Positions 17,301 through 63,803 of a DNA stretch of 64,000 nt are shown piece by piece; the stretch's first letter is position 1; each line of letters begins with the position of its first letter. The notes beneath the pieces were generated by a model. It was not told the DNA's origin and did no database searches. It saw nothing but the letters and a program-made list of their open reading frames with translations. Source of the stretch: Mizuhopecten yessoensis (Eukaryota); contig NW_018479914.1 in NCBI RefSeq assembly GCF_002113885.1, positions 1 through 64,000 on the forward strand, written 5' to 3'. Position numbers and translations under genes: made by a program.

Positions 17301-19610
17301 GGTAGCTTGTTCCTCGTACAGGACATATACACCTTGGTAGCTTGTTCCTCGTACAGGACATATACACCTTGGTAGCTTGTTCCTCGTACAGGACATATAC
17401 ACCTTGGTAGCTTGTTCCTCGTACAGGACATATACACCTTGGTAGCTTGTTCCTCGTACAGGACATATACACCTTGGTAGCTTGTTCCTCGTACAGGACA
17501 TATACACCTTGGTAGCTTGTTCCTCGTACAGGACATATACACCTTGGTAGCTTGTTCCTCGTACAGGACATATACACCTTGGTAGCTTGTTCCTCGTACA
17601 GGACATATACACCTTGGTAGCTTGTTCCTCGTACAGGACATATACACCTTGGTAGCTTGTTCCTCGTACAGGACATATACACCTTGGTAGCTTGTTCCTC
17701 GTACAGGACATATACACCTTGGTAGCTTGTTCCTCGTACAGGACATATACACCTTGGTAGCTTGTTCCTCGTACAGGACATATACACCTTGGTAGCTTGT
17801 TCCTCGTACAGGACATATACACCTTGGTAGCTTGTTCCTCGTACAGGACATATACACCTTGGTAGCTTGTTCCTCGTACAGGACATATACACCTTGGTAG
17901 CTTGTTCCTCGTACAGGACATATACACCTTGGTAGCTTGTTCCTCGTACAGGACATATACACCTTGGTAGCTTGTTCCTCGTACAGGACATATACACCTT
18001 GGTAGCTTGTTCCTCGTACAGGACATATACACCTTGGTAGCTTGTTCCTCGTACAGGACATATACACCTTGGTAGCTTGTTCCTCGTACAGGACATATAC
18101 ACCTTGGTAGCTTGTTCCTCGTACAGGACATATACACCTTGGTAGCTTGTTCCTCGTACAGGACATATACACCTTGGTAGCTTGTTCCTCGTACAGGACA
18201 TATACACCTTGGTAGCTTGTTCCTCGTACAGGACATATACACCTTGGTAGCTTGTTCCTCGTACAGGACATATACACCTTGGTAGCTTGTTCCTCGTACA
18301 GGACATATACACCTTGGTAGCTTGTTCCTCGTACAGGACATATACACCTTGGTAGCTTGTTCCTCGTACAGGACATATACACCTTGGTAGCTTGTTCCTC
18401 GTACAGGACATATACACCTTGGTAGCTTGTTCCTCGTACAGGACATATACACCTTGGTAGCTTGTTCCTCGTACAGGACATATACACCTTGGTAGCTTGT
18501 TCCTCGTACAGGACATATACACCTTGGTAGCTTGTTCCTCGTACAGGACATATACACCTTGGTAGCTTGTTCCTCGTACAGGACATATACACCTTGGTAG
18601 CTTGTTCCTCGTACAGGACATATACACCTTGGTAGCTTGTTCCTCGTACAGGACATATACACCTTGGTAGCTTGTTCCTCGTACAGGACATATACACCTT
18701 GGTAGCTTGTTCCTCGTACAGGACATATACACCTTGGTAGCTTGTTCCTCGTACAGGACATATACACCTTGGTAGCTTGTTCCTCGTACAGGACATATAC
18801 ACCTTGGTAGCTTGTTCCTCGTACAGGACATATACACCTTGGTAGCTTGTTCCTCGTACAGGACATATACACCTTGGTAGCTTGTTCCTCGTACAGGACA
18901 TATACACCTTGGTAGCTTGTTCCTCGTACAGGACATATACACCTTGGTAGCTTGTTCCTCGTACAGGACATATACACCTTGGTAGCTTGTTCCTCGTACA
19001 GGACATATACACCTTGGTAGCTTGTTCCTCGTACAGGACATATACACCTTGGTAGCTTGTTCCTCGTACAGGACATATACACCTTGGTAGCTTGTTCCTC
19101 GTACAGGACATATACACCTTGGTAGCTTGTTCCTCGTACAGGACATATACACCTTGGTAGCTTGTTCCTCGTACAGGACATATACACCTTGGTAGCTTGT
19201 TCCTCGTACAGGACATATACACCTTGGTAGCTTGTTCCTCGTACAGGACATATACACCTTGGTAGCTTGTTCCTCGTACAGGACATATACACCTTGGTAG
19301 CTTGTTCCTCGTACAGGACATATACACCTTGGTAGCTTGTTCCTCGTACAGGACATATACACCTTGGTAGCTTGTTCCTCGTACAGGACATATACACCTT
19401 GGTAGCTTGTTCCTCGTACAGGACATATACACCTTGGTAGCTTGTTCCTCGTACAGGACATATACACCTTGGTAGCTTGTTCCTCGTACAGGACATATAC
19501 ACCTTGGTAGCTTGTTCCTCGTACAGGACATATACACCTTGGTAGCTTGTTCCTCGTACAGGACATATACACCTTGGTAGCTTGTTCCTCGTACAGGACA
19601 TATAAACCTT
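14333..19610. repeat. apparently perfect 35-bp tandem array, ~150 copies
   Basis: Unit cttgttcctcgtacaggacatatacaccttggtag; no internal variant seen; only the terminal copies differ. Confidence 0.98.
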
Positions 19611-37308: not shown

Positions 37309-40126
37309 CAAGATTAAACAAACACGAAACGATGACGTCATGCTTAGGACACAAACCTATGATGTGGTTTATGAGAAGGCATGGTTAAGTGACGTTACGA
37401 TGGGATTCTTCATTGATTGCTTACTATTGCAATGTGCTGAGTAGGGTTACATGTTGAAATTACTGTGAGTACCCTATGAGAACGCGTATCCGTGTAACAG
37501 ATTACCGTGATGTCACTGCCGGAAGTCTCATTCACACAGCTCATGCAATTCTTCGAATTTCAGAGCGCAACCAACTGTTGTTTTTTGGAGCCAACGAGAG
37601 GCTGAAATGTGACTATGCTATGACTGTAAAACAGATTTTATATCTGCATTGCCTTATTTACCATCGTCAGATGGAAATGCTTACATTGCCCACTGATGTA
37701 AACAGAACGGGCCTTGTGCAATACTACATTCCTTCATTCCAACACATCATCCATATTAATTTATTTCAAACTTAATAGTTTTTTATAATGGTAAATGAAA
37801 ATTTAGGTTTCAGCACCTTCGTCTTCGTTTTTCCGAAATGTTCATAGTAAAACATAATCAAAATTAGTAAGAAAACATGTTTCCCTCCGTACAACTTAAA
37901 GGCTGAGAACTAGTGCATAGATTAATGTTGAAAGATTACCCAGATCATATTCGCCAAGAAAATATGTTTGTGAATATTATGAGCATAGTGGGCTACTTTA
38001 GCGAGATTCAGTTTGGGCGATTTGGCGGACTTACAGGTTAATCGCAAAATGTTAAGCATAAGCGAAATCATATGTAGTAGATATGTTCTAACATTTTTAG
38101 TTTTCTGTTACCAAAGTACTCGAACTTCTTAATTTGACTGCACCGTAGATATTGAACTACATTAAATACATGATAATAAATGTGTAACTCGGTTATTAAA
38201 ATAGAAATCTGGTGCATAATTTAGAAACATCGCCAAATTTTTAATCTGGAAAAATATCGTTCTAAACAGTGGTTTCATAGTGGATGTAACACATGATGTT
38301 AACACTTAATTAGCCACTGCCGTAAATATAATATACTAGTAGCCATTAACACCGATATGCTTTAACTTTAGAAATGACGTTCGTTGTCAATGAGTCGTTT
38401 ACCAATGAAAAACAAAAACAAAACTATAGTTAAACGTCGTATATAACACTAAAAAACAACGGTATCAATGTGATGATGCTAACAAGGTATACAAGAATAC
38501 ATTATCTTGTCAGTGTACATAGATAAGTCCTGAGTACTATAGTCCGGAACCTATCCCAAACTATAGTCAACGAATCAATATAACTAACAAACAGCGCTTT
38601 GATTTCAAACTCTATATATTTTGTGTGTAGTTATTTATAATAATAAAATATTGCAATGACGACTGCAGAAATATTGCATAATGATGAAGAGGTGTGGATG
38701 TTGAATACATGGAATGTGTGGATGTGTTTGTACTAGTTAAATGACATTTAATGGAAGGTTTGTTTGATTTTTTGTACAAAAGGAATGATAGACTAATGAG
38801 TGATTGAATTGAAAAAAAATACTTGCCAAGAGATTTGTACAGGAAGATGTAAGTAAGATAGAGAAAGAAATGGTTGTAAATAATGTGACATAGTTATGTG
38901 ATGTTATCATAACTTTACCCGGTGTATATTTGTTATCATTGTATTTTTTATCTTGTTTAAATACCAATTAAAATGATAAATGTGATTATTTTATAAAGAA
39001 TGATAAAGGAGCTTATCAAAGGGATATGCGTTCTTTGATTTTTGTTATTCATACAAAATAAACAACAATATCAGTAAAGTAGGAAATCTAAAAAATATTT
39101 CTTTTTTAAAGATTGTTACAATACGTTATTTTCATTATCAAGAAAAAATTGAAGAGAAAAAAAAAGAGAAAAAAATAATGAGAGGATACAACAGTCACGG
39201 GCCGTTACTTACTTTTATAAATGTTTTGGAAAGTTTCTAGAAAGACCAGAATCTCGATATGGTTTTATTAACCGCAGTAATAGCCGACAATCGGGTCAGG
39301 ACAAAACGTGGTATCAGAGGGAGACGAAGGCATAGCCAACATGAAGATCTTGTTCCAAAATTGTTTTTTCTGAAACCAAGACAACTGGAGAAGTTCAGCA
39401 GGACGATTGCAGACGTAAACAACAAATTCAATATGAAATAAAAGGCTCAAAAGCAAGTATTGTTTCAAAGGCTTCTAAATATGTAACATTTGCTTTTGAA
39501 ATCATAGTTACATTATTTGGCAATAACATAACAATTTTGCAATGCCTTCAGAATTCGTGCAGCTTAATCACTCGTAGTTTAGTGGCATCTAAGTTTTTGT
39601 CAAATTGCAAACAACCGACAATTCACAAGCAAAACCGATGACCAGGACGTGATAACCTACCCCTCTCCAACTTATACAATGTACATGTCAAATATATATA
39701 TGTTTTAAAGATAAGCACTTGTAGATTTCAATTGCACAGTATTTTGTCACCATTTCCCACTCTGAATTCCTCGGAGGCATCCTATTTAAGCACAAATAGC
39801 TTAGGACAGGACCTACAGACATACGAAAGACTTGCTGATGGACTGAATTAGTGAGACGAGTTTCAAACAAAAACAAAGATAAATTCTGGACTTTATTTCA
39901 CCAGTAATTACAATAGTACGTTAGATATCAGTTAAATTTGTTTCTTCTTGTTAACAGTTGATTAAGTATGGAGTGGGGAGAAACTAGACACCATACATTA
40001 ACATGGCAGACACTTAAACAAATAACAAATACATCATGAGCAAGGTCAACACCATGAACAGTTACTAAAACTTGGGGCAAATGTAGCTGATCCTGAGAGG
40101 AAGCGTTTACAGTACCAAATTAATCA

Positions 40127-43100
40127 ACAGTCATGATGGTTTCTGTCGAATCCTAGAACAACTGTCAGACACAATCACCAGTTATGCTGGCTTCAGTCGA
40201 ATCAAAGAACAACTGTCAGTCACAATCACCAGTCATGATGGCTTCAGTCTTATCCAAGAAAAACTGTCATTTACAATCACCAGTCGTTATGACTTCAGTC
40301 GAATCCAAGAACATCTGTCAGTCACAATCACCAGTCATTATGGCTTCAGTCGAATCCAAGAACAACTGCCAGTCACAATCACTAGTCATGATGGCTTCAG
40401 TCGAATCCAAAAACAACTGTCAGTCACAATCACCAGTCGTTATGGCTTCAGTCGAATTCATGAGCAACTGTCAGTCACAATCACCTGTCGTTATGACTTC
40501 CGTAGAATCCAAGAACTACTGTCAGGCACATTCACTAGTCATTATGGCTTCAGTTTTATTCAAGAACAACTGTCATTTACAATCACCAGTCGTTATGGCT
40601 TCAGTCGAATTCAAGAGCAACTGTCAGTCACAATCACCAGTCGTTATGACTTCACAACTGTCAGTCACAATCACTAGTCATGATGGCTTCAGTCGAATCA
40701 ATTCAGTAGAATCCAAGAACTACTGTCAGTCACATTCACCAGTCGTTATGGATTCAGTGGAATCCAAGAACAACTGTCATTCACAATCACTAGTCATTAT
40801 GGCTTCAGTCTTATCCAAGAACAACTGTCATTTACAATCACCAGTCGTTATGGCTTCAGTCGAATCCAAGAACAACTGTCAGTCACAATCACCAGTCATT
40901 ATGGCTTCAGTCGAATCCAAGAACAACTGTCAGTCACAATCACCAGTCGTTATGGCTTCAGTCGAATCCAAGAACAACTGTCAGTCACAATCACCAGTCG
41001 TTATGGCTTCAGTTGAATCCAAGAACAACTGNNNNNNNNNNNNNNNNNNNNNNNNNNNNNNNNNNNNNNNNNNNNNNNNNNNNNNNNNNNNNNNNNNNNN
41101 NNNNNNNNNNNNNNNNNNNNNNNNNNNNNNNNNNNNNNNNNNNNNNNNNNNNNNNNNNNNNNNNNNNNNNNNNNNNNNNNNNNNNNNNNNNNNNNNNNNN
41201 NNNNNNNNNNNNNNNNNNNNNNNNNNNNNNNNNNNNNNNNNNNNNNNNNNNNNNNNNNNNNNNNNNNNNNNNNNNNNNNNNNNNNNNNNNNNNNNNNNNN
41301 NNNNNNNNNNNNNNNNNNNNNNNNNNNNNNNNNNNNNNNNNNNNNNNNNNNNNNNNNNNNNNNNNNNNNNNNNNNNNNNNNNNNNNNNNNNNNNNNNNNN
41401 NNNNNNNNNNNNNNNNNNNNNNNNNNNNNNNNNNNNNNNNNNNNNNNNNNNNNNNNNNNNNNNNNNNNNNNNNNNNNNNNNNNNNNNNNNNNTTCAGTCG
41501 AATCCAAGAACAACTGTCAGTCACAATCACCAGTCGTTATGACTTCAGTCGAATCCAAGAACAACAGTCAGTCACAATCACCAGTCGTTATTGCTTCAGT
41601 CGAATCCAAGTACAACTGTCAGTCACAATCACTAGTCATGATGGCTTCAGTCGAATCAAAGAACAACTGTCAGTCACAATCACCAGTCGTTATGGCTTCA
41701 CTCGAATCAAAGAACAACTGTCATTCACAATAACCAGTCGTTATGGCTTCAGTTGAATCCAAGAACAACTGTCATTCACAATAACCAGTCGTTATGGCTT
41801 CCGTCGAATCCAAGAACAACTGTCAGTCACATTCATAAGTTTTGATGGCTTTTGTCGAATCCAAGAACAACTGTCAGTCACAACAACCAGCCGTTATGGC
41901 TTCAGTCGAATTCATCATCACAAATCATGATGGCGTCAGTCGAATCCAAAAACAACTGTCAGTCACAATCACTAGTCATGATGGCTTCAGTATAATCAAA
42001 GAACAACTGTCAGTCACCATCACCAGTCGTTATGGCTTCCGTCGAATCCAAGAACAACTGTCATTCACAATAACCAGTCGTTATGGCTTCAGTTGAATCC
42101 AAGAACAACTGTCAGTAATCATCACAAATCATGATGGCGTCAGTCGAATCCAAAAACAACTGTCAGTCACAATCACCGGGCATGATGGCTTCAGTCGAAT
42201 CTAGGAACAACTGTCAGTCACAATCCCCAGTCGTTATTGCTTCAGTCGAATCCAAGAACAACTGTCAATCACACTCATCAGTTATGGTGGCTTAAGCCGA
42301 ATCCAAGAACAACTGTTAGTCATAATCACCAGTTGGTATGGCTTCAGTCGAATCCAAGAACAACTGTCAGTCACAACCACTAGTCATGATGGCTTCAGTC
42401 GAATCCGAGAACAACTGTCTGTCATAATCACCAGTCGGTATGGCTTCAGTCGAATCCAAGAACAACTGTCAGTCACAACCACTAGTCGTTATAGCTTCAG
42501 TCGAATCCAAGAACAACTGTCAGTCACAACCACCAGTCGTTATGGCTTCAGTCGAATCCAAGAACAACTGTCATTCACAATCACTAGTCATTATGGCTTC
42601 AGTCTTATCCAAGAACAACTGTCAGTCACAATCACCGGTCATGATGGCTTCAGTCGAATCCGAGAACAACTGTCTGTCATAATCACCAGTCGTTATGGCA
42701 TCAGTCGTATCCAAGAACAACTGTCAGTCACAATCACTAGTCATGATGGCTTCAGTATAATCAAAGAACAACTGTCAGTCACAATCACGAGTCATTATGG
42801 ATTCAGTCGAATCCAAGAACAAATGTCATTCACAATCACCAGCCTTAATTGCTTCAGTCGAATCCAAGAACAACTGTCAGTCACAATCACCAGTCGTTAT
42901 GACTTCAGTCGAATCTAAGAACAACTGCCAGTCACAATCGCCAGTCATTATGGCTTCTGTCGAATCCAAGAACAACTGTCAGTCACAATCACCAGTCGTT
43001 AGGGCTTCAGTCGAATCCAAGAACAAATGTCAGTCATAATCACCAGTCGGTATGGCTTCAGTCGAATCCAAGAAAAACTGTCAGTCACAATCACCAGTCT

Positions 43101-46100
43101 TTATGGCTTTAGTCGAATCCAAGAACAACTGTCAGACACAATCACCAGTCGTTATGGCTTTAATCGAATCCAAGAACAACTGTCACTCACAATCACCAGT
43201 CGTTATGACTTAAGTCGAATCTAAGAACAACTGCCAGTCACAATCGCCAGCCATTATGGCTTCTGTCGAATCCAAGAACATCTGTCAGTCACAATCACCA
43301 GTCATGATGGTTTCAGTCGAATCCGAGAACAACTGTCTGTCATAATCACCAGTCGGTATGGCTTCAGTCGAATCCAAGAAAAACTGTCAGTCACAATCAC
43401 CAGTCATTATGGCTTCAGTCGAATCCAAGCACCACTGTCAGTCACAATAACCAGTCGTTATGGCTTCAGTCGCATCCAAAAACAACTGTCATTCACAATC
43501 ACCAGTCGTTATGGCTTAAGTCGAATCCAAAAACAACTGTCATTCACAATCACCAGTCGTTATGGCTTTAATCGAATCCAAGAACAACTGTCAGTAACAA
43601 CAACCAGTCGTTATGGCTTTAGACGAATCCAAAAACAACTGTCATTCACAATCACCAGTCGTTATGGCTTAAGTCGAATCCAAGAACAACAGTCAGTCAC
43701 AATCACCAGTCGTTGTGACTTCAGTAGAGTCCAAGAACAACTGTCAGTCACAATCCCCAGTCGTTATGACTTCAGTCGAATCCAAGAACACCTGTCAGTC
43801 ACAATCACCAGTCGTAATGGCTTCAGTCGAATCCAAGAAAAACTGTCAGTCACAATCACCAGTCTTTATGGCTTTAGTCGAATCCAAGAACAACTGTCAT
43901 TTACAATCACCAGTTGTTATGGCTTCAGTCACTTCACGCAAATCAAAGAACAACTGTCATTCACAATAACCAGCCGTTATGGCTTCAGTCGAATCCAAAA
44001 AAAACTGTCAGTCACAATAAACAGTCGTTATGGCTTCAGTCGAAACCAAAAACAACTGTCAGTCTCAATTACCAGTCGTGTTATGGCTTCAGTAGAATCA
44101 AGAAACAACTGTCAGTCACAATCACCGGTCGTTATGGCTTCAGTCGAATCTAAGAACAACTGCCAGACACAATCGCCAGTCATTATGGCTTCTTTCGAAT
44201 CCAAGAACAACTGCCAGTCACAATCCCCAGTCATGATGGTTTCAGTCGAATCCGAGAACAACTGTCAGTCACAACCACTAGTAGTTATAGCTTCAGTCGA
44301 ATCCAAGAACGACTGTCAGTCACAATCACCAGTCGTAATGGCTTCAGTCGAATCCAAGAAAAACTGTCAGTCACAATCACCAGTCTTTATGGCTTTAGTC
44401 GAATCCAAGAACAACTGTCCGTCATCATCACAAATCATGATGGCTTCAGTCGAATCCAAGAACACCTGTCAGTCACAATCACCAGTCGTTATGGGTTCAG
44501 TCGAATCCAAGAACAACTGCCAGTCACAATCGCCAGCCATTATGGCTTCTGTCGAATCCAAGAACATCTGTCAGTCACAATCACCAGTCGTTAGGGCTTC
44601 AGTCGAATTCAAGAGCAACTGTCAGTCACAATACAAGTTTTGATGGCTTCAGTCGAATCCAAGAGCAACTGTCAGTCACAATCACCAGTCGTTGTGACTT
44701 CAGTAGAGTCCAAGAACAACTGTCAGTCACAATTGTCAGTCGTTATGGCTTCAGTAGAATCAAGAAACAACTGTCAGTCACAATCACCAGTCGTTATGGC
44801 TTCAATCGAATCCAAGAACAACTGTCAGTCACAATAATCAGTTATGATGGCTTCAGTCGAATCCAAAACCAACTGTCAATCACACTCATCAGTTATGGTG
44901 GCTTAAGCCGAATCCAAAAACAAATGTCAGTCACAATCACCAGTTATGATGGTTTCAGTCGAATCCAAGAACAACAGTCAGTCACAATCACCAGTCGTTA
45001 TGGCTTCAATCGAATCCAAGAACAACTGTCAGTCACAATCACCAGTCATGATGGCTTCAGTCGAATCCAAGAACAACTGTTAGTCACAATCACCAGTCGT
45101 TATGACTTCAGTCGAAAGAACAACTGTCATTCACAATAACCAGTCGTTATGGCTTCAGTCGAATCCTAGAACAACTGTCATTTACAATCACCAGTTGTTA
45201 TGGCTTCAGTCAAATCCAAGAACAACTGTCAGTCACAACCACTAGTCCTTATAGCTTCAGTCGAATCCAAGAACAACTGTCAGTCACAATAACCAGTCGT
45301 TATGGCTTCAGTCGAATCCTAGAACAACTGTCATTTACAATCACCAGTCGTTAGGGCTTCAGTCGAATCCAAGAACAACTGTCAGTCACAATACAAGTTT
45401 TGATGGTTTCAGTCGAATCCAAGAGCAACTGTCAGTCACAATCACCAGTCGTTATGGCTTCAGTCGAATCCTAGAACAACTGTCAGTTACAATCACCAGT
45501 CGTTAGGGCTTCAGTCGAATCCAAGAACAACTGTCAGTCACAATTACCAGTCGTTATGACTTCAGTCGGGAGAACAACTGTCATTCACAATAACCAGTCG
45601 TTATGGCTTCAGTCGAATCCTAGAACAACTGTCAGTCACAATCATCAGTTGTTATGGCTTCAGTCGAATCCAAGAACAACTGTCAGTCACATTCATAAGT
45701 TTTGATGGCTTCAGTCGAATCCAAGAACAACTCTCAGTCACAATCACCAGTCGTTATGGCTTCAGTCGAATCCAAGAACAACTGCCAGTCACAATCACTA
45801 GTCATGATGGCTTCAGTCGAATCCAAAAACAACTGTCAGTCACAATCACCAGTCGTTATGGCTTCAGTCGAATCCAAGAACAACTGTCAATCACACTCAT
45901 CAGTTATGGTGGCTTAAGCCGAATCTAAGAACAAATGTCAGTCATAATCACCAGTCGGTATGGCTTCAGTCGAATCCAAGGACAACTGTCAGTCACAACC
46001 ACTAGTCATGATGGCTTCAGTCGAATCCGAGAACAACTGTCTGTCATAATCACCAGTCGGTATGGCTTCAGTCGAATCCAAGAACAACTGTCAGTCACAA

Positions 46101-46655
46101 TCACCAGTCGTAATGGCTTCAGTCGAATCCAAGAACAACTGTCAGTCACAACAACCAGTCGTTATGGCTTCAGTCGAATCCAAGAACTACTGTCAGTCAC
46201 AATCACCAGTCGTAATGGCTTCAGTCGAATCCAAGAACAACTGTCAGTCACAATTACCAGTCGTTATGGATACAGCAGAATCCAAGAACAACTGTCATTC
46301 ACAATCACTAGTCGTTATGGCTTCAGTCTTATCCAAGAACAACTGTCAGTCACAATCACCAGTCATGATGGCTTCAGTCGAATCCGAGAACAACTGTCAG
46401 TCATAATCACCAGTCGTTATGGCTTCAGTTGTATCCAAGAACAACTGTCAGTCACAATCACTAGTCATGATGGCTTCAGTATAATCAAAGAACAACTGTC
46501 AATCACAATCACCAGTCGTTATGGCTTCAATCGAATCCAAGAACAACTGTCAGTCATAATCACCAGTCGTTATGACTTCAGTCGAATCCAAGAACTGTCA
46601 GTCACTTTCACCAGTCATTATGGCTTCAGTCGAATCCAAGAACAACTGCCAGTCA
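40127..46655. repeat. 51-bp minisatellite, ~6.5 kb including a 461-N gap, intergenic
   Basis: Unit cagtcgttatggcttcagtcgaatccaagaacaactgtcagtcacaatcac; diverged copies with stops and indels. Confidence 0.96.
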
Positions 46656-49648: not shown

Positions 49649-49746
49649 ATGCAGGAGAAAATCCACCATGAAGAGTACTGGATATCAGGAAGTATTAGGG
49701 ACACCCAGTTTGAGGACCTATATACAATTGGCACAGAACTGGGAAG
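49649..49746 (+). CDS. CaMKIV-like exon 1
   Basis: MQEKIHHEEYWISGSIRDTQFEDLYTIGTELGR; donor AAG|GTAGGT. Confidence 0.88.
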
Positions 49747-52700
49747 GTAGGTTTTTTTAAACACATTTAAGATTATTCGATTATTGATTTGTTTTTATTA
49801 CAGTCTCTGCTATGCTAACAGACCTGTTCACTTTGTATTGTTGTTGAATTACATGTTCCTATGTATCGCCCCTTTCGAGTTTTTTGGGTTGATGATGTGT
49901 TTCATTTTGGTTCAGTGTCCGTTATGTTCTAATTGTTTTGTATGTTATTCTTTTTCATTATGCAATATATCTTGATTATGTTGTTTCTTTATTCGTCAGG
50001 GGGACAAGTGCGGTGGTATACAGATGTGAGCACGTTGGAACTAAAAAGGCGTATGCAGTGAAGAAAATCCCTAAACAGGTGTGTTACTATATAATACATA
50101 ACGATTAAATAAACATTCGTAAACTCAAGTAAAAATACGTTCATAATGAATACAATCTAACAATGATACCACATAAAACCCATAGTAACGACAGTGGCCT
50201 TTAGAAGCGTTGTACATGGAGTCCTGTATAATATACCAAAATATCGACTTGTATTGTTGTTTACTAAGTGACAGGCTCAATATACCACACATTTATGTTA
50301 TACCCTGTATGATCTGTCATTGTATTTGGATCCCTTTAAACAAATACAACAACCATTCTTAAAACGTTAATTAACCGACACATATACTACGCCTAAATAA
50401 AGGGCCAACTCGTGCACATCTAGGGTAACAGCAAAATATTTCAGTGTGAACGGCGGTAATTAATTGTATTTACGAAGTCTTGAAACATGTCTCAATATCA
50501 GCTTCCCTAGGCATTTTAATCAAATACTTGAATTTCTATGTTTTTGTCTTTAATTATAAAGCTGTACATTGTTACGTTAAACACTGTCTCGGAACTACTG
50601 AATTATTTAACTACTGACAATATTACCTTTTCCTATTCGTATAGACTCGAAGTGTTGTTGGAGTCTGTACCAATGTAAATTGTACTAAAAGTCTGAATTT
50701 AATGTATGACCACTGCGGACCGAGTTGTGATGATCGTGTCAGATAAGTCAATACGTGCTATTAATAAAAATAATAAATACCTGAAACAGACGCATGTATA
50801 CGTGTTCACCTCAGTATATATCCACATTAAAGACGATGCTTTTGTACAGAATAATGACAGTAGATGTATATTATTATCTTACTCTTTATAACATATAAAT
50901 GTTAAGTGTGTAGTATACTTAGTAAACTACAGACCAGCATATTGTTAATAGATACCCGCTAGTAAATTGATTTCAGTTAAATGATATCGCTATTATCCAT
51001 GTTAACAATCAAATATGGCGTAATCTAGCGTGTGTCTGTGTATTTTGAATTTCAGAAAAACCGGAAAGTGGTACCAGCAGATGTTGGAAACCTCCTACAC
51101 ATAAGACATCCCAATGTTGTAAGTAAATCTACGAAACCATAAATAATATAACATTTTAAGTAAATTACTAAGATCTTATAAATCGCCTAAACTTAAGAAG
51201 CCCGATAATTTAAGTAAATCTCCTAAATCTAGCAAATCTCAGTGATTTAAATAAACGTCCATGGCTTGAAACATCCAATTTTGTGCATGAGTATCATGTA
51301 ACTCAGCCATCGATAGTAAAAGTGAAATATCTAGCATATATCATCAGATAATACGTGAAATATCTAGCATATCTCATCAGATTTAAGTGAAATATCTAGC
51401 ATATCTCATCAGACAATAAGTGAAATATCTAGCATATATCATCAGGTTATAAGTGAAATATTTAGCATATATCATCAGACAATAAGTGAAGTATCTAGCA
51501 TATCTCATTAGACAATAAGTGAAATATCTAGCATATCTCATCAGATTTAAGTGAAATATCTAGCATATCTCATCAGACAATAAGTGAAATATCTAGCAAA
51601 TATCATCAGGTTATAAGTGAAATATTTAGCATATATCATCAGACAATAAGTGAAGTATCTAGCATATCTCATTAGACAATAAGTGAAATATCTAGCATAT
51701 CTCATCAGATTTAAGTGAAATATCTAGCATATCTCATCAGACAATAAGTGAAATATCTAGCAAATATCATCAGACAATAAGTGAAATATCTAGCAAATAT
51801 CATCAGATTATTAGTGAAATATCTAGCATATGATTAAGCTAACGTCCATGGCTTGAAACATCCAATTTTGTGCGTATCATGTAACTCAGCCATCGATAGT
51901 AAAAGTGAAATATCTAACATATATCATCAGATTTAAGTGACATATCTAGCATATCTCATCAGATTTAAGTGAAATATCTAGCATATATCATCAGATATTA
52001 GTAATCTATCTTAAATCTGAGATATCATCGTGATTATTTAGAGAGAAAAAAAATAAAAAAAATCGATAATATAAATGTTCCATATCAGAGACATCACAAT
52101 ATTGTAAGTGAAAATATCCAACATCTGAGATACCCATATGATGTGAGTAATAAAAAATGCCTGCGTCATTAAGCACGTTTTAATTATAATTCTTGGTTTC
52201 CTGAGGTATATTTGATAACTGCGGACATTTGTCACTTTTACACTATAATAAGTTTATTATGACATTCTCAGTTATTGTATTGTTTCCAACAACTAGAGCA
52301 AACATTTCATTTGTCATGCATAGCAGAACAATTTTCGCATAATTGTTGTTTAGATACACATCACAGAACTGTACGAGACGAAGACCCATATCTACCTGAT
52401 GATGGAGCTTGTCACCGGGGGAGAACTTTTTGACAGGTCAGTGGTCCCTCCCAACACATCAAACATGTTGTTGAAGTCAAAATTGTGCACCTAAATATAC
52501 AACGTGCATTTTCATTATTCACCAATTAAGTAAAAAGGTTCTATACATGTGATATAGATATTTATTTAAAACAATCTCGTATTATGTCGAAACAAATACC
52601 AGTGAAAACCACATGTTTCAAGACTGAATGAGATGCTTGGGTAAAACACATTTTTGATAGTTAAATTTAATCGACTGTATTTGCGTACTAAGAAATGCAA

Positions 52701-55700
52701 CTTGATTATATGTGAAACTTTTCAATCTTAACATATGATTCAATATAAAAAAATAAATATATGTCTGGTAATTATATATCCTTCTATCCAGAATCGTTGC
52801 CCGAGGTTCCTTCTCAGAAAAAGATGCAGCCGAAGCCATGAGGGATATATTGAGAGCACTTAAGGTAATTAAGTATAACATGAGGGATATACTGATAGCA
52901 GTTAAGGTAAAGACGTATAACATGGGAGATATACTGAAAGCACTTAAGGTTGTGACGTATAACATGAGAGATATACTGAGAGCAGTTAAGGTAAAGACGT
53001 ATAACATGGAAGATATACTGAAAGCACTTAAGGTTGTGACGTATAACATGAGTGATATACTGAGAGCAGTTAAGGTAAAGACGTATAACATGAGAGATAT
53101 AATTAGAGCATTTAAGGTAATGACGTATAACACGAGAGATATACTGAGAGCATTTGAAGTAATGACGTGTATCATGAGAGATATACTGAGAGCACTTAAG
53201 GTAATGACGTATAACATAGGAGATATACTGAGAGCACCTAAGATAATGACGTATAACATGAGAGATATACTGAGAGCAGTTAAGGTAAAGACGTATAACA
53301 TGGGAGATATACTGAAAGCTCTTAAGGTTGTGACGTATAACATGAGTGATATACTGAGAGCATTTAAAGTAATGACGTATAACACGAGAGATATACTGAG
53401 AACATTTAAGGTAATGACGTATAACATGAGTGATATACTGAGAGCATTTAAAGTAATGACGTGTAACATGAGAGAAATACTGAGAGCACTTAAGATAATA
53501 ACGTATAACATGAGACATATACTGAGAGCACTGAAGATAATAACGTATAACATGAGACATATACTGAGAGCACTGAAGATAATAACGTATAACACGAGAG
53601 ATATACTGAGAATACATAAGGTAATGACGTGTAGAATGAGAGATATACTGAGAGCATTTATGGTAATGACGTATATCATGAGAGAAATACTGAGAGCACT
53701 TAAGATAATAACGTATAACACGAGAGATATACTGAGAGATTTGAAGTAATGACGTATAACATGGAAATATACTGAGAGCACATAAGTTAATGACGTGTAG
53801 CATGAGAGATATACTGAGATCATTTAAAGTAATGACGTTTATCATGAGAGATATACTGAGAGCACTTAAGGTAATGACGTATAACATGAGAGATATTCTG
53901 AGCGCACTTAAGATAATGGCGTATAACATGAGAGATATACTGAGAGCACAGAAGGTAATGACGTGTAGAATGAGAGATATACTGAGAGCATTTGAAGTAA
54001 TGACGTATATCATGAGAGAAATACTGAGAGCACTTAAGATAATAACGTATAACACGAGAGATATACTGAGAGCATTTAAAGTAATGACGTATAACATGGA
54101 AATATACTGAGAGCACATAAGTTAATGACGTGTAGCATGAGAGATATACTGAGATCATTTAAAGTAATGACGTTTATCATGAGAGATATACTGAGAGCAC
54201 TTAAGGAAATGACATATAACACGAGAGATATACTGAGAGCACTTTAGGTAATGACGTATAACACGAGAGATATACTGAGAGCATTTGAAGTAATGACGTG
54301 TAACATGAGGGATATACTGAGAGCACTTAAGGTAAAGATGTATAACATGAGAGATATAATTAGAGCATTTAAGGTAATGACGTATAACACGAGAGATATA
54401 CTGAGAGCACTTTAGGTAATGACGTATAACACGAGAGATATACTGAGAACATTTAAGGTAATGACGTATAACATGAGTTATATACTGAGAGCATTTAAAG
54501 TAATGACGTATAACATGAGAAATAAAATTAGAGTTTTTAAGGTAATGACGTATAACACGAGAGATATACTGAGAACATTTAAGGTAATGACGTATAACAT
54601 GAGTTATATACTGAGAGCATTTAAAGTAATGACGTATAACATGAGAAATAAAATTAGAGTTTTTAAGGTAATGACGTATAACACGAGAGATATACTGAGA
54701 GCATTTGAAGTAATGACGTGTAACATGAGGGATATACTGAGAGCACTTAAGGTAAAGATGTATAACATGAGAGATATAATTAGAGCATTTAAGGTAATGA
54801 CGTATAACACGAGAGATATACTGAGAGCACTTTAGGTAATGACGTATAACACGAGAGATATACTGAGAACATTTAAGGTAATGACGTATAACATGAGTTA
54901 TATACTGAGAGCATTTAAAGTAATGACGTATAACATGAGAAATAAAATTAGAGTTTTTAAGGTAATGACGTATAACACGAGAGATATACTGAGATCATTT
55001 AAAGTAATGACGTTTATCATGAGAGATATACTGAGAGCACTTTAGGTAATGACGTATAACATGAGAGATATACTGAGAGCACTTAAGGTAATGACGTATA
55101 ACATGAGAAATATAATTCGAGTTTTTAAGGTAATGACGTATAACACGAGAGATATACTGAGAGTATTTGAAGTAATGACGTATAACAAGAGAGATATACT
55201 GAGAGCATTTGAAGAAATGACGTGTAACATGAGAGATATACTGAGAGCAGTTAAGGTAAAGACGTATAACATGAGAGATATAATTAGAGCACTTAAGGTA
55301 ATGATGTATACCATGAGAGATCTGCTGAGAGCACTTAAGGTAATGACGTATAACATGAGAGATATACTGAGAGCATTTAAGGTAATGACGTATAACATTA
55401 GGTATATACTGAGAGCACTTAAAGTAATGACATATAACACGAGATATACTGAGAGCACATAAGGTAATGACGTGTAGAATGAGAGATATACTGAGAGCAT
55501 TTATGGTAATGACGTATATCATGAGAGAAATACTGAGAGCACTTAAGATAATAACGTATAAAACGAGAGATATACTGAGAGCATTTGAAGTAATGACGTA
55601 TAACATGGAAATATACTGAGAACACATAAGTTAATGACGTGTAGCATGAGAGATATACTGAGATCATTTAAAGTAATGACGTTTATCATGAGAGATATAC

Positions 55701-58700
55701 TGAGAGCACTTAAGGTAATGACATATAACACGAAGGATATACTGAGAGCACTTAAGGTAAAGACGTATAACACGAGAGATATACTGAGAGCACTTTAGGT
55801 AATGACGTATAACACGAGAGATATACTGAGAGCATTTGAAGTAATGACGTGTAACATGAGAGATATACTGAGAGCACTTAAGGTAAAGACGTATAACATG
55901 GGAGATATAATTAGAGCATTTAAGGTAATGACGTATAACACGAGAGATATACTGAGAGCACTTAAGGTAAAGACGTATAACATGAGAAATATACTGAGAG
56001 TATTTAAGGTAAAGACGTATAATATGAGAGATATACTGAGAGCATTTAAGGTAATGACGTATAACATTAGTTATATACTGAGAGCACTTAAAGTAATGAC
56101 ATATAACATGAGAGATATACCGAGAGCACTCAAGTTAATGACGTATAACATGAGCTCGAGGGATACACTGAGAGCACTTAAGGTAATGACGTATAACACG
56201 AGATATACTGAGAGCACTTAAGGTAACGACGTATAATATAATAGACTTAAGGTAATGACGTATAACATGAGATACACTTAGAGCGCTTAAGGTAATGACG
56301 TATAATATAATATAATTGAGGTAATGACATATAACATGGGAGATAACGTAAAACAATCATTCAACATGTTACAATTTTTTATCAGGTGTTGAGATAAATG
56401 TGAGTTAGTTCAAAGTGAATATGTACTTCGAGCAGCTTGATGCCAATCAGTGCTATTCTAAAGTTGATTGATATGTTAAGAGATATTTTCATAATTGAAA
56501 GCACTGAGTTTGTTATAAAGTTAGTCAACTTGTCAAGAAAAGTGTGTTTTCGGTTGTAGTGCATGCACGATAATGGAGTGGTCCACTTTGACGTGAAGGT
56601 AGGTTGAACAGTTTGTTTTAATTTACACGTGCACAATGTAACTCTTCTTAAACAATATAAGTACATCATAAATATACATTGATAATTTATACAATGTATA
56701 TATCAACTACATGCTTTCAACATACACTAGTTCAGAGATAGCCATTGTACAGTATTTCAGGGCACATCCTCCTATAAACCTAAAACTAGTTTAGATAGAA
56801 TACATTATACACTGGTTTGTTATGTGTTTTAAGTGCACAAGACATTTGTAACAGAACCGATCTGGGTCATTCACTAATGACTTTGTATAGTTCGTAAAAC
56901 CGGTACTTGTCGTTGTCATTTTCTTTCTGACTATTTGGCGTCAAATTATTTTGTTAAATAAGAGAGGAATGTACCGGAACTGATTTGGATTAATCGCCTG
57001 AGACAAAGTACATGTAGCTTAGTTGGAGAAATTGCCCATCTACAATTTAAAGGTCGGAAGTCCGGGATTCGAATCCAGGTCTGATCAAGTTTTGTAATTC
57101 TTTATTGATCGTAAACTGATACAGTTTATAGATACAACCTTTGCATTAAACTTAATTACAACAAATATTTCCAGGGCCATTCCATTAATACAATATTTAA
57201 TTATCTACTAAATAGTTTGCTCGTAATATGTTCGTTGATGGACAAATGTTCCTAAATTACACAATTCTTTCGTATTTACAGATGATAGAAATATAACTAA
57301 TTTAAAGACGGAGGGATTTATTCGATTATAGGGCTTAATATATTTGGTTCTCAAATCATTATACAAGGGGCATTTTAACATGAAATGATATTCGTCCTCG
57401 ATGTCATTAAGACACAAGGCAAGTTCGAAGCTGACGTGGAACATGGGTGTGTCTGCCTGATTCGATAAGAAGACAATGTGAAATTAAACGTAATCTAACA
57501 ATAGCTTTTATATAATAGGCAGGAATTGGTTTTGAAAGATGAGTTTGCAATGCTAAGTGATCTACAATATGCCTGTATAAAACACATTTTGGTGGCGAAA
57601 CAAAAAAAGTCTCACACTTTTGCTTGAAATTGTCTAATAAACGTTGTTTAACAATATATATAAAATTGTTTGCATTTATAATATGTTGGGAAACCCAAAT
57701 GTCCATCATACCTAATGAGTAGAGCTCGTGTTTGACTTTCGCAACCCAGTTTTTTACAATTTGGATTAGCCCCACATTCGTTGTACATGTACTCGTAACA
57801 TCCTTTTAAAATACAACTGTTGATAGGGGTTAACTTACACCAGTATTTAAATATTCTTAATTTGCGTAAGAGGGACAATGGGAACCTCCCCAGTTCAAAG
57901 TATACCATAGCATTTGGTGTCGACAGTTTAACTCCAAGAATATTTTTACAAAAATCTAATTGTACCCTCTCAATGTCAGGGGCTGTATGGAATCCCCATA
58001 CTTCACTACTATATCCCGCCACACTTCCTACAGATGTGTCAAAGAGACTCAATAATGTGGAAAAATTTAAAAACATTGGTACACAAGCCGAAATTAATGA
58101 GAATAATGCTTTCCTACATTGTGATGCTAACTGTTTTTCGATAAATTAAAGTTTGCACTTTTCCTTTTTCATGTGTATAACCTATCCAGTTAATCATTCA
58201 AATTACATGAATACAGTTACACAATAATATTCACATTAAATCATTACACTTGTTAAATCAACATTTATACTCTTTTCAGCCTGAAAATCTTCTGTATGAA
58301 AGCAACAAAGACCATTCAAAACTGAAATTAGGTGGGTATGACAATAAAGCTATATCCAAAAGTGGCACATAAACAATATCACAGCCAATGCCAATAGGTC
58401 CCTAGGTTTTCTCAAACGCAACCTGAAAATAAACTCACCACATATAAAAGAACATGCATACAAAGCACTAGTTAGGCCTAAACTTGAATACTGCTCTTCC
58501 ATTTGGGATCCACACAACACAAACCAAATTAAACAAATAGAAAAAACACAACGAAGAGCAGCACGCTACGTACACAGCAGATACCACAACACTAGTTCCG
58601 TAACAGACATGATCCACACACTTCAATGGCCAACACTACAAACACGACGCTTATACACTAGAATTATCCTTTTTTACAAAATTATACACAGAATCGTAGC

Positions 58701-61700
58701 TTTAAACCCAACACATATACTCACACCTGTAGACCCCCGCACCAGACAAGTACACCCGTACGCATACAAACACATATCTGCTACAAAGGACACCTGATGA
58801 CCAGTGTGTTAAATAAACTATGTTCTTTTTGTTGTCCATTAGATGCTGTATATAAGTACTAAGTAATGGTTTTGTTATCAGTCCTTGTTTTCGGGGAGCG
58901 TGTAGATCGACACGTATACTAAGTAGCTGGTATAACACTAGCCCTTGTTGTTTTTAGTAGTTGTTTTAGAGAGAAAAGGGTTTTATTGTCTCTGTTATCA
59001 GAAATGTTAAAAAACAGTTTCCTGATCACAAGATTAAGTATAATTGCTAATATACAAGTCTGTCATTTAATTGGACCGATAAGTAAGTAACGGTATAAGT
59101 GTGTCAATAGTAACGGCACAAGTCTAGAACAAATTCTTTCATTCATGTCAAGGTATCTATTTCTATTGTTCTAACTCAGATAACTTGTTTTATTTTATGT
59201 ATACAGAGAATAGTTTTAAAAAAATACACTTTTTTTGGTATGTATAGACAAACATTTATGAATAAATGTTTTTATATTTGTTGTATAGCCTGCCCTCGTA
59301 CCAGCTATGTTGCATATAATGTCTCCTGCTGGTACAATATCACGTTTTAGCGAAGTGTGACAGAGTCTTGTACCGTTGTTGGTGATAAATGTATGTATGT
59401 TACAGCCGACTTCGCTCTGCACCGTATAATAGCTGGTGATGTGAGATCTAACTCTGTCTGCGAGTCACCGGGATACGTTCGTAAGTACAAAACATATATC
59501 ATATGTATCATAGCTGGTGAACGTTATTATATATTTCTATAGACGTCAGTGACATAGTCGTTCGTTACGTACCGGTAAACGTGTATTGCAAAACCATGCG
59601 TTATATAAGCACGGGTTCCAACGCATACATTGTATAAACCTGGGTTACCAAGACATTCGTTATATGGGCGTGGGTTACAATAAAATGTTACATAGGCGTG
59701 GATTGCAGTGAAATGTTATATTGGCGTAAGTTACAATAAAATGTTATATAGGCGTGGGTTACAATAAAATGTTATATAGGCGTGGGTTACAATGAAATGT
59801 AACATGGGCGTGGATTGCAGTGAAATGTTATATTGGCGTAGGTTACAATAAAATGTTATATAGGCGTGGGTTACAATAAAATGGTATATAGGCGTGGATT
59901 ACAATTAAATGTTATAAAGGCATGGGTTACAATAAAATGTTAATTAGGCGTGGGTTACAATGTAATGTTATAAAGGCGTAGGTTACAATAAAATGTTATA
60001 TAGGCGTGGGTTACAGTGAATGTAACATGGGCGTGGATTGCAGTGAAATGTTATATTGGCGTAGGTTACAATAAAATGTTATGTAGGCGTGGGTTACAAT
60101 AAAATGGTATATAGGCGTGGATTACAATTAAATGTTATAAAGGCATGGGTTACAATAAAATGTTAATTAGGCGTGGGTTACAATGTAATGTTATAAAGGC
60201 GTAGGTTACAATGAAATGTTATATAGGCGTGGGTTACAGTGAAATGTAACATGGGCGTGGGTTCCAATTAAATGTTACATGGGCGTGGGTTACAATGAAA
60301 TGTTATATAGGCCTGGGTTACAATAACATGTTACATGGGCGTGGGCTACAATAAAATGTTACATAGGCGTGGGTTACAATGAAATGTGATATAGGCGAGG
60401 GTTACAATGAAATGTCATATAGGCGTGGGTTACAATGAAATGTTACATGGGCGTGGGTTACAATAAAATGTTACATGGGCGTGGGTTACAATAAAATGTT
60501 ATATAGGCGTGGGTTACAATACAATGTTACATAGGCGTGGGTTACAATGAAATGTTATATAGGCGTGGGTTACAATGAAATGTTATATATGCGTGGGTTA
60601 CAAAAACATTCGTTACAAGCGGACCATAACAAGGCTTTAAGNAAATATAACAATAATGTAGTGGTTAATATAACAATATACAACAGTGGTTAATATAACA
60701 ATACTGTAGTGGTTAATATAACAATATACAATAGTGGTTAATATAACAATACTGTAGTGGTTAATATAGCAATACAGTAGTGGTAAATATAACAATACTG
60801 TAGTGGTTAATATAACAATATACAATAGTGGTTAATATAACAATACTGTAGTGGTTAATATAACAATACTGTAGTGGTTAATATAGCAATACAGTAGTGG
60901 TAAATATAACAATACTGTAGTGGTTAATATAACAATATACAACAGTGGTTAATATAACAATACTATAGTGGTTAATATAACAATACTGTAGTTGTTAATA
61001 TAGCAATAGAGTTGTGGTTAATATAACAATACAGTAGTGGTTAATATATCAATACAGTAGTGGTCAATATAGCATTATACAGTAGTGGTTAATATAACTA
61101 TACAGTAGTGGTTAATATAACAATACAGAAGTGGTTAATATAGCAATACAGAAGTGGTTAATATAGCAATAGAGTTGTGGTTAATATATCAATACAGAAG
61201 TGGTTAATATAACAATACAGTAGTGGTAAATATAACATTATACAGTAGTGGTTGATATAACAATACAGTAATGGTTATGATATAACGATACAGTAATGGT
61301 TAATATATCAATACTGTAGACGTTAATATAACAATACAGTAGTGATTAATATAACATTATACAGTAGTGGTTAATATAACATTATACAGTAGTGGTTAAT
61401 ATAACATTATACAGTAGTGGTTAATATAACATTATGCAGTAGTGGTTAATATAACAATACAGCAGTGGTTAATATAATAATACTGTAGTGGTTAATATAA
61501 CAATACAGTAGTGGTCAATATAACAATACAGAAGTGGTTAATATAACAATACAGTAGTGGTTAATATAGCAATATAGTTGTGGTTAATATAACAATACAC
61601 AAGTGGTTAATATAACATTATACAGTAATAGTTAATATAGATAAATAATATCTCCCGAATAAATATTAACAGTCTTAAAATGGACACTCGATACAGCTGA

Positions 61701-63803
61701 TATAGAGTATAGCATATACTTTATATCATATCCAACATTGCTTTTACCGTGAGGACAATTTAAAACGACTCATATAAATATAATATATAACAAAAATATT
61801 TCGTGGACAGTGTATAAATATTATATTACATTAAGACTATATATTTTATCAAATAACTGTTGCGTACATTATGACACAATAAATGTATAAGATGGCTCAC
61901 AGTGTGTAGTATGATGATTCATATACAATGCTACATAACATAGGCGAGTCATAACATGACATGAAATTTACATGACATGGATGTATTTTAAAAAATATAT
62001 CTACAATATGCACTATAACATCTTTTTTCCCCAGACTATGCGGTGTTGAACCATTCGAAAGCGTAAATCATGATGTTGGCGAGATATACAAGAAAATTCT
62101 CAAAGTAGATTACAAGTTTGATCCGACAGTCTGGTCGAAAATAAGCGAAAATGCAAAGGTTAGTACTATTGACTTAACACAATAAGAAAGGAGGTTTCGC
62201 CTCCTTGATCACCTGAGCCCGTATTCATGAAATCGTTCTTATGCTCAAGTATGGATTTTAAGCCTAATTTCTTGTTTCAGTAATAAATCAATAAAAAAGC
62301 CTAATTTGTCAATGCTTCGGAAAAATTTGAAGAGACTCAAAAAAGCATAAGGTTTTCAATATTTACATTTGACGTTTTTGATCATTTGACATGATTTAAG
62401 GGAGTGACAAGAAAACTGATTTGAGCACAGAATCAATGTTTGATCATGAGAACGGTTTCATGAATATGGACCCTGAGTTTTCCCAGTACTTGATCTTTTC
62501 TATTAAAGATAGTATTTGCAGAAATGTTCGTTGCATAATGACGAATTTGTACTTTATTTCATTATTATTATATTAAACTTTTAAGTGCATATTCAGGGAG
62601 AAAGTGCATAACTTAACTTCATTTGAATGAAGTTGACCTTACGCTGATACTGTATTTTTATTTATCTTTGTCAAAAAGAGTCATCGAAATATTGTATATA
62701 CGTCGGTATTAATTCATCAGCCTACTATTAATGACATATCTGAGTTTTCCGTTACAAGTAAGTACACAAATATAAACGTACCTTCATGCTTTGTCTACTT
62801 ACATGTACTTACAGGATTTTATTACAAGATTATTACAAAAAGATCCCAGGAAGAGATTGTCAGTAGACGCAGCTCTCCGACACCCTTGGGTAATTGGCAC
62901 GGCCGCAAAAGGTGACCATCTCATCGAAACCCAGGAGAAAATCCGAGAGTTTAACGCCAGAAGGAGGTTGAAGGTATGGCTTCGTGTTTGTATTGTTTAG
63001 TGGTCCATCGACAATGATGCGAGTCATTTTGGGCCAAACGTGAAAGATAAGGCATCACCATGAAATATTATAAACACACAGCAATGTGAAGGACACAATT
63101 GAAACTCAATACAACGTATAATATAACAACAATGCGAAGGTGCATGCCAAAGAGAAAATGATGCAAAGTGAAGACACATGAATGTAATTGACTACAATGT
63201 GAAAGTGAGACATCGATGAAAAGGTGAAATATAACGACATAAAGTTAAGTCAAATAACGATAAGACAGCAATGTGAAGGTAACAAACAACGACGCAAAGG
63301 TAAGGCACATCGAAGTAACGATAAGACAGCAATGTGAAGGTAAAACACAACGACGCAAAGGTAAGGCACATAAAAGTAACGATAAGACAGCAATGTGAAG
63401 GTAAAACAACGACGCGAAGGTAAGGCACATCAAAGTAATGATAAGACAGCACTATGAAGGTAAAACACAAAGACGCAAAGGTAATGCACATCAAAGTAAC
63501 GATAAGGCAGCGTATAAAGGCAACACAACGATGCAATTTTCGGGTTCGGGTTTATTCCCTTATAGAATAATATAAAGCCGTCGTTATGTTATACGTCGAC
63601 TGTGAATTTACATTGTGTCGCGACTATTGTCTAGCAATCATTCATACAGTAATTTGAATAGATGGTAGTGCCATATTTCTTGTGTATTTTAGGCTGCAGT
63701 GGGAGGGGTTCTCTTCGCATCCAAAGCTGCTAGGATGATGAGCAACATGAGGGCAAGTGTGACAATACAGGTGGACAACAACCAGATATCTACAGACGCA
63801 TAG
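49649..63803 (+). CDS. CAMK4: calcium/calmodulin-dependent protein kinase type IV-like (divergent); one exon missing from the assembly
   Basis: Exons 49649-49746, 50000-50078, 51056-51118, 52354-52436, 52792-52864, 56560-56598, 58280-58331, 59406-59480, [missing], 62035-62158, 62815-62973, 63693-63803. CaMKIV-type signatures YWISGSIRD, ELGRG, YAVK, MELVTGGELFDRIV, LCGVEPF, HPWVIGTAA..QEKIREFNARRRLKAAV. The symbol denotes the family; orthology is not established. Confidence 0.9.
50000..50078 (+). CDS. CaMKIV-like exon 2
   Basis: GTSAVVYRCEHVGTKKAYAVKKIPKQ (Gly loop, beta3 Lys). Confidence 0.92.
51056..51118 (+). CDS. CaMKIV-like exon 3
   Basis: KNRKVVPADVGNLLHIRHPNV; tttcag / GTAAGT. Confidence 0.9.
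51254..52000. repeat. 31-33-bp minisatellite in kinase intron 3, with its ~75-bp leader duplicated (51254 and 51841)
   Basis: Unit aagtgaaatatctagcatatctcatcagacaat / ...cagattt. Confidence 0.9.
52354..52436 (+). CDS. CaMKIV-like exon 4
   Basis: IHITELYETKTHIYLMMELVTGGELFDR. Confidence 0.95.
52792..52864 (+). CDS. CaMKIV-like exon 5
   Basis: IVARGSFSEKDAAEAMRDILRALK; donor AAG|GTAATT. Confidence 0.92.
52837..56345 (+). repeat. 42-bp minisatellite (~83 copies) spanning the exon 5/intron 5 junction
   Basis: Unit catgagagatatactgagagcacttaag|gtaatgacgtataa; the first copy is the coding end of exon 5. Confidence 0.96.
56560..56598 (+). CDS. CaMKIV-like exon 6 (catalytic loop)
   Basis: CMHDNGVVHFDVK; ttgtag / AAG|GTAGGT; phase 0-0 fits both neighbours. 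Confidence 0.9.
57015..57085 (+). mobile_element. degenerate tRNA-like SINE head
   Basis: A box tagcttagttgg, B box ggattcgaatcc; no intact cloverleaf. Confidence 0.5.
57208..58142 (-). mobile_element. 5'-truncated, frameshifted non-LTR retrotransposon ORF2 C-terminus (RTEX-like)
   Basis: Three overlapping minus-strand ORFs: EKQLASQCRKALF..GYSSEVWGF..IERVQLDFCKNILGVK..ELGRFPL; RLRLISHCLLIESGRH; C-terminal Zn-knuckle CLNDIEDEYHFMLKCPLYNDLR. Confidence 0.88.
58280..58331 (+). CDS. CaMKIV-like exon 7
   Basis: PENLLYESNKDHSKLKL; tcttttcag / GTGGGT. Confidence 0.93.
58363..58797 (+). mobile_element. CR1-group LINE fragment (post-RT region)
   Basis: WHINNITANANRSLGFLKRNL..AYKALVRPKLEYCSSIWDPH..IEKTQRRAARYV..SSVTDMIHTLQWPTLQTRR. 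Confidence 0.9.
59406..59480 (+). CDS. CaMKIV-like exon 8 (DFG-equivalent and activation loop)
   Basis: ADFALHRIIAGDVRSNSVCESPGYV; ttacag / GTAAGT. Confidence 0.92.
59600..60620. repeat. 28-bp minisatellite (~35 copies)
   Basis: Unit ggcgtgggttacaataaaatgttatata. Confidence 0.93.
60643..61640. repeat. 23-25-bp minisatellite (~42 copies) starting at the single-N gap
   Basis: Unit gtggttaatataacaatacagta. Confidence 0.93.
62035..62158 (+). CDS. CaMKIV-like exon 10
   Basis: LCGVEPFESVNHDVGEIYKKILKVDYKFDPTVWSKISENAK; ttttttccccag / GTTAGT. Confidence 0.93.
62216..62472. mobile_element. MITE, PIF/Harbinger-like
   Basis: Imperfect ~25-bp TIRs agcccgtattcatgaaatcgttctt / gagaacggtttcatgaatatggacc, flanked by a 3-bp CTG duplication (62213-62215, 62473-62475). 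Confidence 0.7.
62815..62973 (+). CDS. CaMKIV-like exon 11
   Basis: DFITRLLQKDPRKRLSVDAALRHPWVIGTAAKGDHLIETQEKIREFNARRRLK. Confidence 0.95.
63245..63535. repeat. ~60-bp tandem repeat (~5 copies) in the last kinase intron
   Basis: Unit aagtaacgataagacagcaatgtgaaggtaaaacacaacgacgcaaaggtaaggcacatc. Confidence 0.88.
63693..63803 (+). CDS. CaMKIV-like last exon (end of calmodulin-binding helix, stop)
   Basis: AAVGGVLFASKAARMMSNMRASVTIQVDNNQISTDA*; tattttag acceptor. Confidence 0.88.
   Translation, partial: AAVGGVLFASKAARMMSNMRASVTIQVDNNQISTDA

Follow-up and report, generated by a model that had tools for sequence, protein, structure and literature searches.

A donor-seeded 42-bp minisatellite in intron 5 of a CaMKIV-like kinase gene of the scallop Mizuhopecten yessoensis

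Introduction

When a minisatellite multiplies the end of a coding exon together with its 5' splice site, which of the many donors does the spliceosome use? This question is raised by the first 64,000 nucleotides (nt) of contig NW_018479914.1 of Mizuhopecten yessoensis (NCBI RefSeq assembly GCF_002113885.1), the whole of which is called the window here. In the window, intron 5 of an atypical CaMKIV-like kinase gene begins with about 83 tandem units of 42 base pairs (bp), the first of which spans the real exon 5 donor. An initial annotation, made from the sequence alone, had proposed that surviving donors form an in-frame ladder of kinase isoforms, that copy number tunes isoforms or dosage, and that recombination among the copies rewrites the end of the coding exon. 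Its fallback was that only the first donor is used.

The reading we favor, and consider likely, is that the array is a neutral, lineage-specific intronic minisatellite of the type called mirages, and that it is spliced out whole since the most upstream donor wins. Once the Mizuhopecten line had separated from Ylistrum and Pecten, a segment of 42 bp spanning the junction of exon 5 and intron 5 would have been duplicated in tandem. It would then have been amplified and shuffled by ordinary minisatellite turnover, presumably through slippage or unequal exchange. The spliceosome would take the most upstream donor and discard the other 82 copies as intron, which is the outcome found for the dominant mRNA in two data sets. 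Experiments on human F7 suggest that 5'-to-3' priority of the first donor, together with exon definition, may underlie this choice. The copies in the array would meanwhile drift neutrally.

Structure and origin of the array

Tandem Repeats Finder (TRF) identified a period of 42 bp with 81 copies and 84% matches at 52837-56236, followed by a decayed tail to 56338. Segmentation by dynamic programming resolved 83 units and a fragment (Table 1), with 74 of the units exactly 42 nt long. The first unit consists of the last 27 nt of exon 5, which are its last nine codons, and the first 15 nt of the intron. Alignment of the unit with the exon 5 junction gave a score of 93, compared with a mean of 27 for shuffled sequences (p about 0.0005). 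The composition and copy number given in the initial annotation were thus confirmed by TRF, by segmentation and by the shuffle test. No copy of the 42-bp unit was found elsewhere in the window, where the best match was 25 of 42 positions. The start of exon 6 was not significantly similar to the tail of the unit (p = 0.23).

The first 80 units comprise 53 distinct types. Blocks of up to seven units have been duplicated within the array; for example, units 35-41 recur as units 45-51, and units 29-33 recur as units 65-69. These block duplications point to turnover, as expected from unequal exchange. The mixture of intact and lost donors described initially is borne out by the unit counts, with GT kept in 66 of the 80 units and AAG/GT (the slash marks the cut) in 39. 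These 39 units carry GTAATG (24 units), GTAAAG (11), GTTGTG (three) and the native GTAATT (one). Fifteen of the GT pseudo-donors are in frame and stop-free (Table 1), and at eight of these the site reads AAG/GTAATG or AAG/GTAAAG.

The array is therefore of the mirage or F7 type: its units are of minisatellite size and lie head to tail, the first spans a real junction, many but not all keep the donor, and the dominant mRNA is still spliced at the authentic site. Four of the five features by which exon-intron boundary minisatellites are recognized were tested and found; the fifth is copy-number variation between alleles or cells. It is extremely improbable that an assembly error joined the array to the exon or exaggerated the array length. 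The draft assembly is gapped near repeats and lacks exon 9 of the kinase gene, and copy number is known from the assembly alone. However, the array contains no N and a great variety of units, its first unit is continuous with exon 5, the unit itself is exon-derived, and pieces of the array were found in an independent run.

Donor use in RNA

Fourteen runs, from five studies, are probably RNA and contain the 3' exons. Four runs were compared with 52340-52969, which covers exon 4, exon 5 and units 1-3. Runs X1 (depth 24.5) and X2 (depth 158.4), which are from different studies, each gave one unbranched contig across exons 3-4-5-6. Both contigs skip intron 4, leave the reference at 52864 and continue into the first bases of exon 6. 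Two gene models from NCBI, P0001 and P0153, also splice at this position. Donor 52864 is the dominant donor in mRNA, and the fallback of the initial annotation, strict choice of the first donor, agrees with the RNA contigs, with both NCBI models and with what has been documented for human F7 (PMC1557585).

Contigs drop minor paths and minor forms, and within this limit X1 and X2 showed no loose ends at 52906 or 52948 and no contig running from exon 5 into unit 2. Any downstream donor depends on the latter path, because such a transcript would have to continue past unit 1 into unit 2; donors 4 and beyond were judged in this indirect way. Two short contigs of X2 (depth 8 and 6.5) fit units 72-73 by their differences, and they cross a pseudo-donor unspliced, as intron or DNA would. 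The raw-read runs X21 and X24 had no reads over 52340-52969 and hence provided no junction counts. Since contigs lose minor paths and the raw runs lack coverage here, donor 2 or 3 may be in minor use.

The open frame and the predicted position of an insert

The stop-free frame over about 21 units and the phase 0 start of exon 6, both part of the proposed ladder, were confirmed (Table 1). The frame is open because the unit is 14 codons long and has no stop. Ten of the 80 units disrupt the frame when each is read in its own register. The consensus is open in three of its six frames, open reading frames (ORFs) of 401 and 434 codons run along the minus strand of the same DNA, and other arrays in the window contain ORFs of equal or greater length. 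As evidence the long open frame is weak, and it can be explained without function. Among the distinct variants in units 2-21, 27 are non-synonymous and five synonymous, where 76% non-synonymous would be expected under neutrality. These units vary like neutral DNA and show no sign of coding constraint. A coding variable number tandem repeat under protein-level selection was rejected, as the units lie outside the dominant mRNA and the 27:5 variants are not depleted in amino acid changes.

An AlphaFold model of the Ylistrum orthologue (mean predicted local distance difference test score, pLDDT, 84) was used to locate the junction in the protein. The model places helix alphaE at residues 117-136, with the start of the repeat at M124 and the splice junction just after K132. 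The sequence of alphaE is nearly identical among the three scallops. With the junction inside alphaE, and not after it as the initial annotation implied, an insert would be predicted to fall within this core helix rather than in a loop. Extra residues could in principle loop out N-terminally, with the insert repeating half of the helix. In-frame additions of n x 14 residues are possible as proposed, but the first extra donor would add VIKYNMRDILIAVK and not the consensus peptide.

A functional ladder, in which in-frame donors would yield kinase isoforms with n x 14 additional amino acids and array length would tune their mix or dose through nonsense-mediated decay (NMD), is thus very improbable. 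The 15 in-frame stop-free GT sites would allow it, as would the position of the open run at the 5' end (P about 0.04), and the kinase has atypical motifs (HFD, DFA), hence it might tolerate change. However, no such junction was seen in the contigs, no protein-level constraint or purifying selection is apparent in units 2-21, the insert would fall inside a near-identical helix, donors past unit 6 would require exons of more than 300 nt, and both orthologues lack the array. Tuning of isoforms or dosage by copy number likewise found no support. If several in-frame copies were used in the expressing tissue, graded longer isoforms would result, and a heritable array length would shift the balance between them and NMD-bound products; the chance of this is very small.

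Comparison with other scallops

Intron 5 occupies the same position in Ylistrum (392 nt) and Pecten (364 nt), and the array is absent from both orthologous introns. The unique 3' part of the intron, 56348-56559, gave no alignment above chance with these introns. Because the outgroups share the intron and lack the array, the array postdates the intron and, of these three species, is particular to the Mizuhopecten line. For the same reason, gain of the intron by tandem duplication of a proto-splice site was rejected.

The array consensus agrees with both outgroups at unit positions 6 and 13, two sites where the live exon carries synonymous changes. The X1 and X2 contigs carry these changes and match the reference exon without a difference. 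Thus, the array preserves an older version of the exon 5 end, and the exon has not been overwritten by it. The initial claim that recombination rewrites the coding end of the exon, whether by gene conversion or by unequal crossing-over, is contradicted at these two sites, and we consider it most unlikely. A G at unit position 6 is common to units 1, 2, 36 and 46 and could reflect exchange near the boundary. However, the T of the exon at position 13 is private, as are the intron bases at +6 and +8, the exonic peptide MRDILRALK is identical in Ylistrum, the exon is the same in the reference and in two RNA data sets, and the boundary units of mirages typically escape homogenization (PMC3087553). 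On the Mizuhopecten lineage, 23% of the shared synonymous codons have changed, which suggests a fairly early origin of the array, although these are very small numbers.

Donor strength and known boundary minisatellites

Several points weigh against the neutral reading with first-donor splicing. First, the RNA evidence consists of assembled contigs, in which minor paths are lost, and the identification of the runs as RNA is a guess, although splicing is evident in them. Secondly, the decoys are equally good by U1 duplex energy, at -6.6 to -6.8 kcal/mol compared with -6.6 kcal/mol for the native site. Third, the array begins with its longest open run of units (P = 0.043 by permutation of unit order for a first run of at least 21 units, the units being non-independent). 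Lastly, the two nearest copies serve as donors in the human IFI6 and CBS arrays, as summarized in PMC1557585.

The donors were scored by U1 match counts and U1 duplex energies, not by a scallop-trained splice-site model. Since the decoys pair with U1 about as well as the native site, position and not strength would decide, as inferred from mutagenesis of F7 (PMC1557585). The +5 G of both orthologues is missing from the native donor, and the donors of Ylistrum (GTAAGC) and Pecten (GTAAGG) are stronger. A private +6 T in the native donor adds a U1 match (8 versus 7 of 11); as a single substitution, this is only a hint of compensation.

A leaky array, in which donor 2 and perhaps donor 3 would be used in at least 5% of transcripts, is unlikely, though less so than the ladder. 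The products would carry 14 or 28 additional amino acids and would be NMD-escaping by-products, probably misfolded. Donor 2 (AAG/GTAAAG, -6.8 kcal/mol) is in frame and would produce a normal-sized exon of 115 nt, the native donor has no +5 G, and the IFI6 and CBS arrays are a precedent (PMC1557585); such minor forms would be invisible in contigs. On the other hand, no contig was found over the unit 1-2 intron at depth 158, when rarer distal pieces of the array (depth 6-8) survived, the longer isoform is not among the database proteins, and the +6 T favors the native site.

First-donor splicing of the whole array resembles what has been described for other boundary repeats. In the minisatellites of human F7, LMNB2 and PDGF, the authentic donor alone is used (PMC1557585). 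The 37-bp variable repeat of F7 intron 7 is similar in that its first unit spans the donor and, although pseudo-donors lie downstream, only the most upstream donor is used, but it consists of 5-9 units in which 4 nt are exonic and the donors are identical (PMC1557585). In contrast, the 83 units of the scallop array have diverged, include 27 exonic nt and are of a length divisible by three. In IFI6 (6-16) intron 2 and CBS intron 13 the real donor is followed by 15-25 repeats of it, which makes them the precedent for a ladder, and the two nearest pseudo-donors serve in splicing as well, as summarized in PMC1557585. None of the corresponding pseudo-donors was seen in use in the scallop contigs, which drop minor forms. 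The mirages of amphioxus Adh3 and the globins BflGb6 and BflGb9 are also arrays at exon-intron boundaries that leave regular splicing undisturbed, and their boundary units escape homogenization (PMC3087553). The scallop array differs in its mollusc host and in having 83 copies, compared with 3-6 in BflGb6 (PMC3087553).

This type of repeat is therefore already known from amphioxus and human genes, to which the scallop array adds a large example. No paper was found in a search of the literature on scallop intronic minisatellites. The array provides a natural test of first-donor priority outside mammals, in which 38 AAG/GT decoys of similar predicted strength are ignored by the dominant mRNA. 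Recursive splicing at AG/GT ratchet points was also considered and rejected; the unit is only 37% pyrimidine on its sense strand and does not provide the polypyrimidine tract and acceptor that such points have.

Host kinase gene

The coordinates of the gene and the array are collected in Table 1. Exon 11 is 100% identical to P0001, which is OWF36517.1 of M. yessoensis, annotated as CaMKIV. The orthologues of Ylistrum balloti and Pecten maximus are 91% and 89% identical, and the canonical CaMKIV paralogue about 60-62%. HFD or HYD replaces HRD, and DFA replaces DFG, in every copy that spans these positions. The alphaC Glu is replaced by Asp in Mizuhopecten and by Asn in Pecten. The kinase is an atypical CaMKIV paralogue that is conserved in scallops. 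It resembles the CaMKIV family in its kinase domain and calmodulin-binding tail, and the solved structure closest to the Ylistrum orthologue is that of CaMKIV, PDB 2W4O (E = 1e-99). It differs as a scallop-specific paralogue with HFD/HYD and DFA, and the canonical scallop CaMKIV is found on the same contigs. The kinase is transcribed in some RNA runs and absent from two others, thus it is probably tissue-restricted.

Table 1. Positions of the kinase gene, its exons and its repeat arrays in the window.
Feature	Position	Strand	Evidence or remark
Host gene, atypical CaMKIV-like kinase OWF36517.1	49649-63803	+
Exons upstream of exon 4	49649-49746, 50000-50078, 51056-51118	+
Exon 4	52354-52436	+	Spliced to exon 5 in RNA contigs (355-nt GT-AG intron)
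Exon 5, 73 nt, the last 27 of which form the exonic portion of unit 1	52792-52864	+	RNA contigs, orthologues
Authentic 5' splice site AAG/GTAATTAA, cut after 52864	52862-52872	+	RNA contigs
42-bp donor-seeded minisatellite, about 83 units, decayed 3' end	52838-56347	+	TRF, segmentation
303-codon open frame, units 1-21	52838-53749	+	Unit 22 breaks the frame by a 1-nt deletion
15 in-frame, stop-free GT pseudo-donors (units 2-9, 11-15, 19, 20)	52906-53662	+
Intron 5 unique 3' part with acceptor	56348-56559	+
Exon 6, phase 0, CMHDNGVVHFDVK, with catalytic loop	56560-56598	+	Joined to 52864 in RNA contigs
Exons downstream of exon 6	58280-58331, 59406-59480, 62035-62158, 62815-62973, 63693-63803	+
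Kinase intron 3 array, 33 bp	51320-51996
Kinase intron 8 array, 28 bp	59659-60603
Kinase intron 8 array, 23 bp	60644-61639
Kinase intron 11 array, 61 bp	63250-63511

Exon 9, which encodes the end of the activation segment and alphaF (27-28 codons), is absent from the assembled letters at 59481-62034 of the window. Its counterparts are at L001:6263-6348 in Ylistrum and L002:12397-12482 in Pecten, and both NCBI models lack the exon 9 part. A single N is present at 60642, between the 28-bp and 23-bp arrays. The absence of exon 9 is probably an assembly gap.

Other features of the window

Tandem repeats make up 35% of the window, with arrays in four introns of the kinase gene. Seeding of the arrays of introns 3, 8 and 11 by their own donors was not significant (p = 0.09-0.84), and neither was derivation of the two intron 8 arrays from the missing exon 9 (p = 0.36-0.84). 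Intron 8 of the Pecten orthologue contains an unrelated array of 290 copies of 13 bp (L002:8102-11880) that starts 40 nt past the donor; Mizuhopecten has two other arrays in this intron and Ylistrum has none. These differences among the three scallops indicate that arrays turn over independently in the kinase gene. Decayed ends resembling LINE (long interspersed nuclear element) reverse transcriptase were recognized by eye at 57407-58149 (minus strand) and 58380-58780 (plus strand), in introns 6 and 7; a Pfam match was not found for 57407-58149 on the minus strand.

Outside the kinase gene, a 35-bp array of 151 copies with 99% identity lies at 14325-19610; on the minus strand, three of its frames contain ORFs of about 1,790 codons. 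It is either very young or a product of assembly. A 51-bp (17-codon) array of more than 110 copies, at 40122-46655, has long frames with no sign of coding and lies between the kinase gene and a CUB-like gene. The latter is a multi-exon gene on the plus strand at about 27000-37310, with a weak Pfam match to CUB at 30398-30646 (E = 0.004) and a transmembrane-like segment in its last exon (36997-37308).

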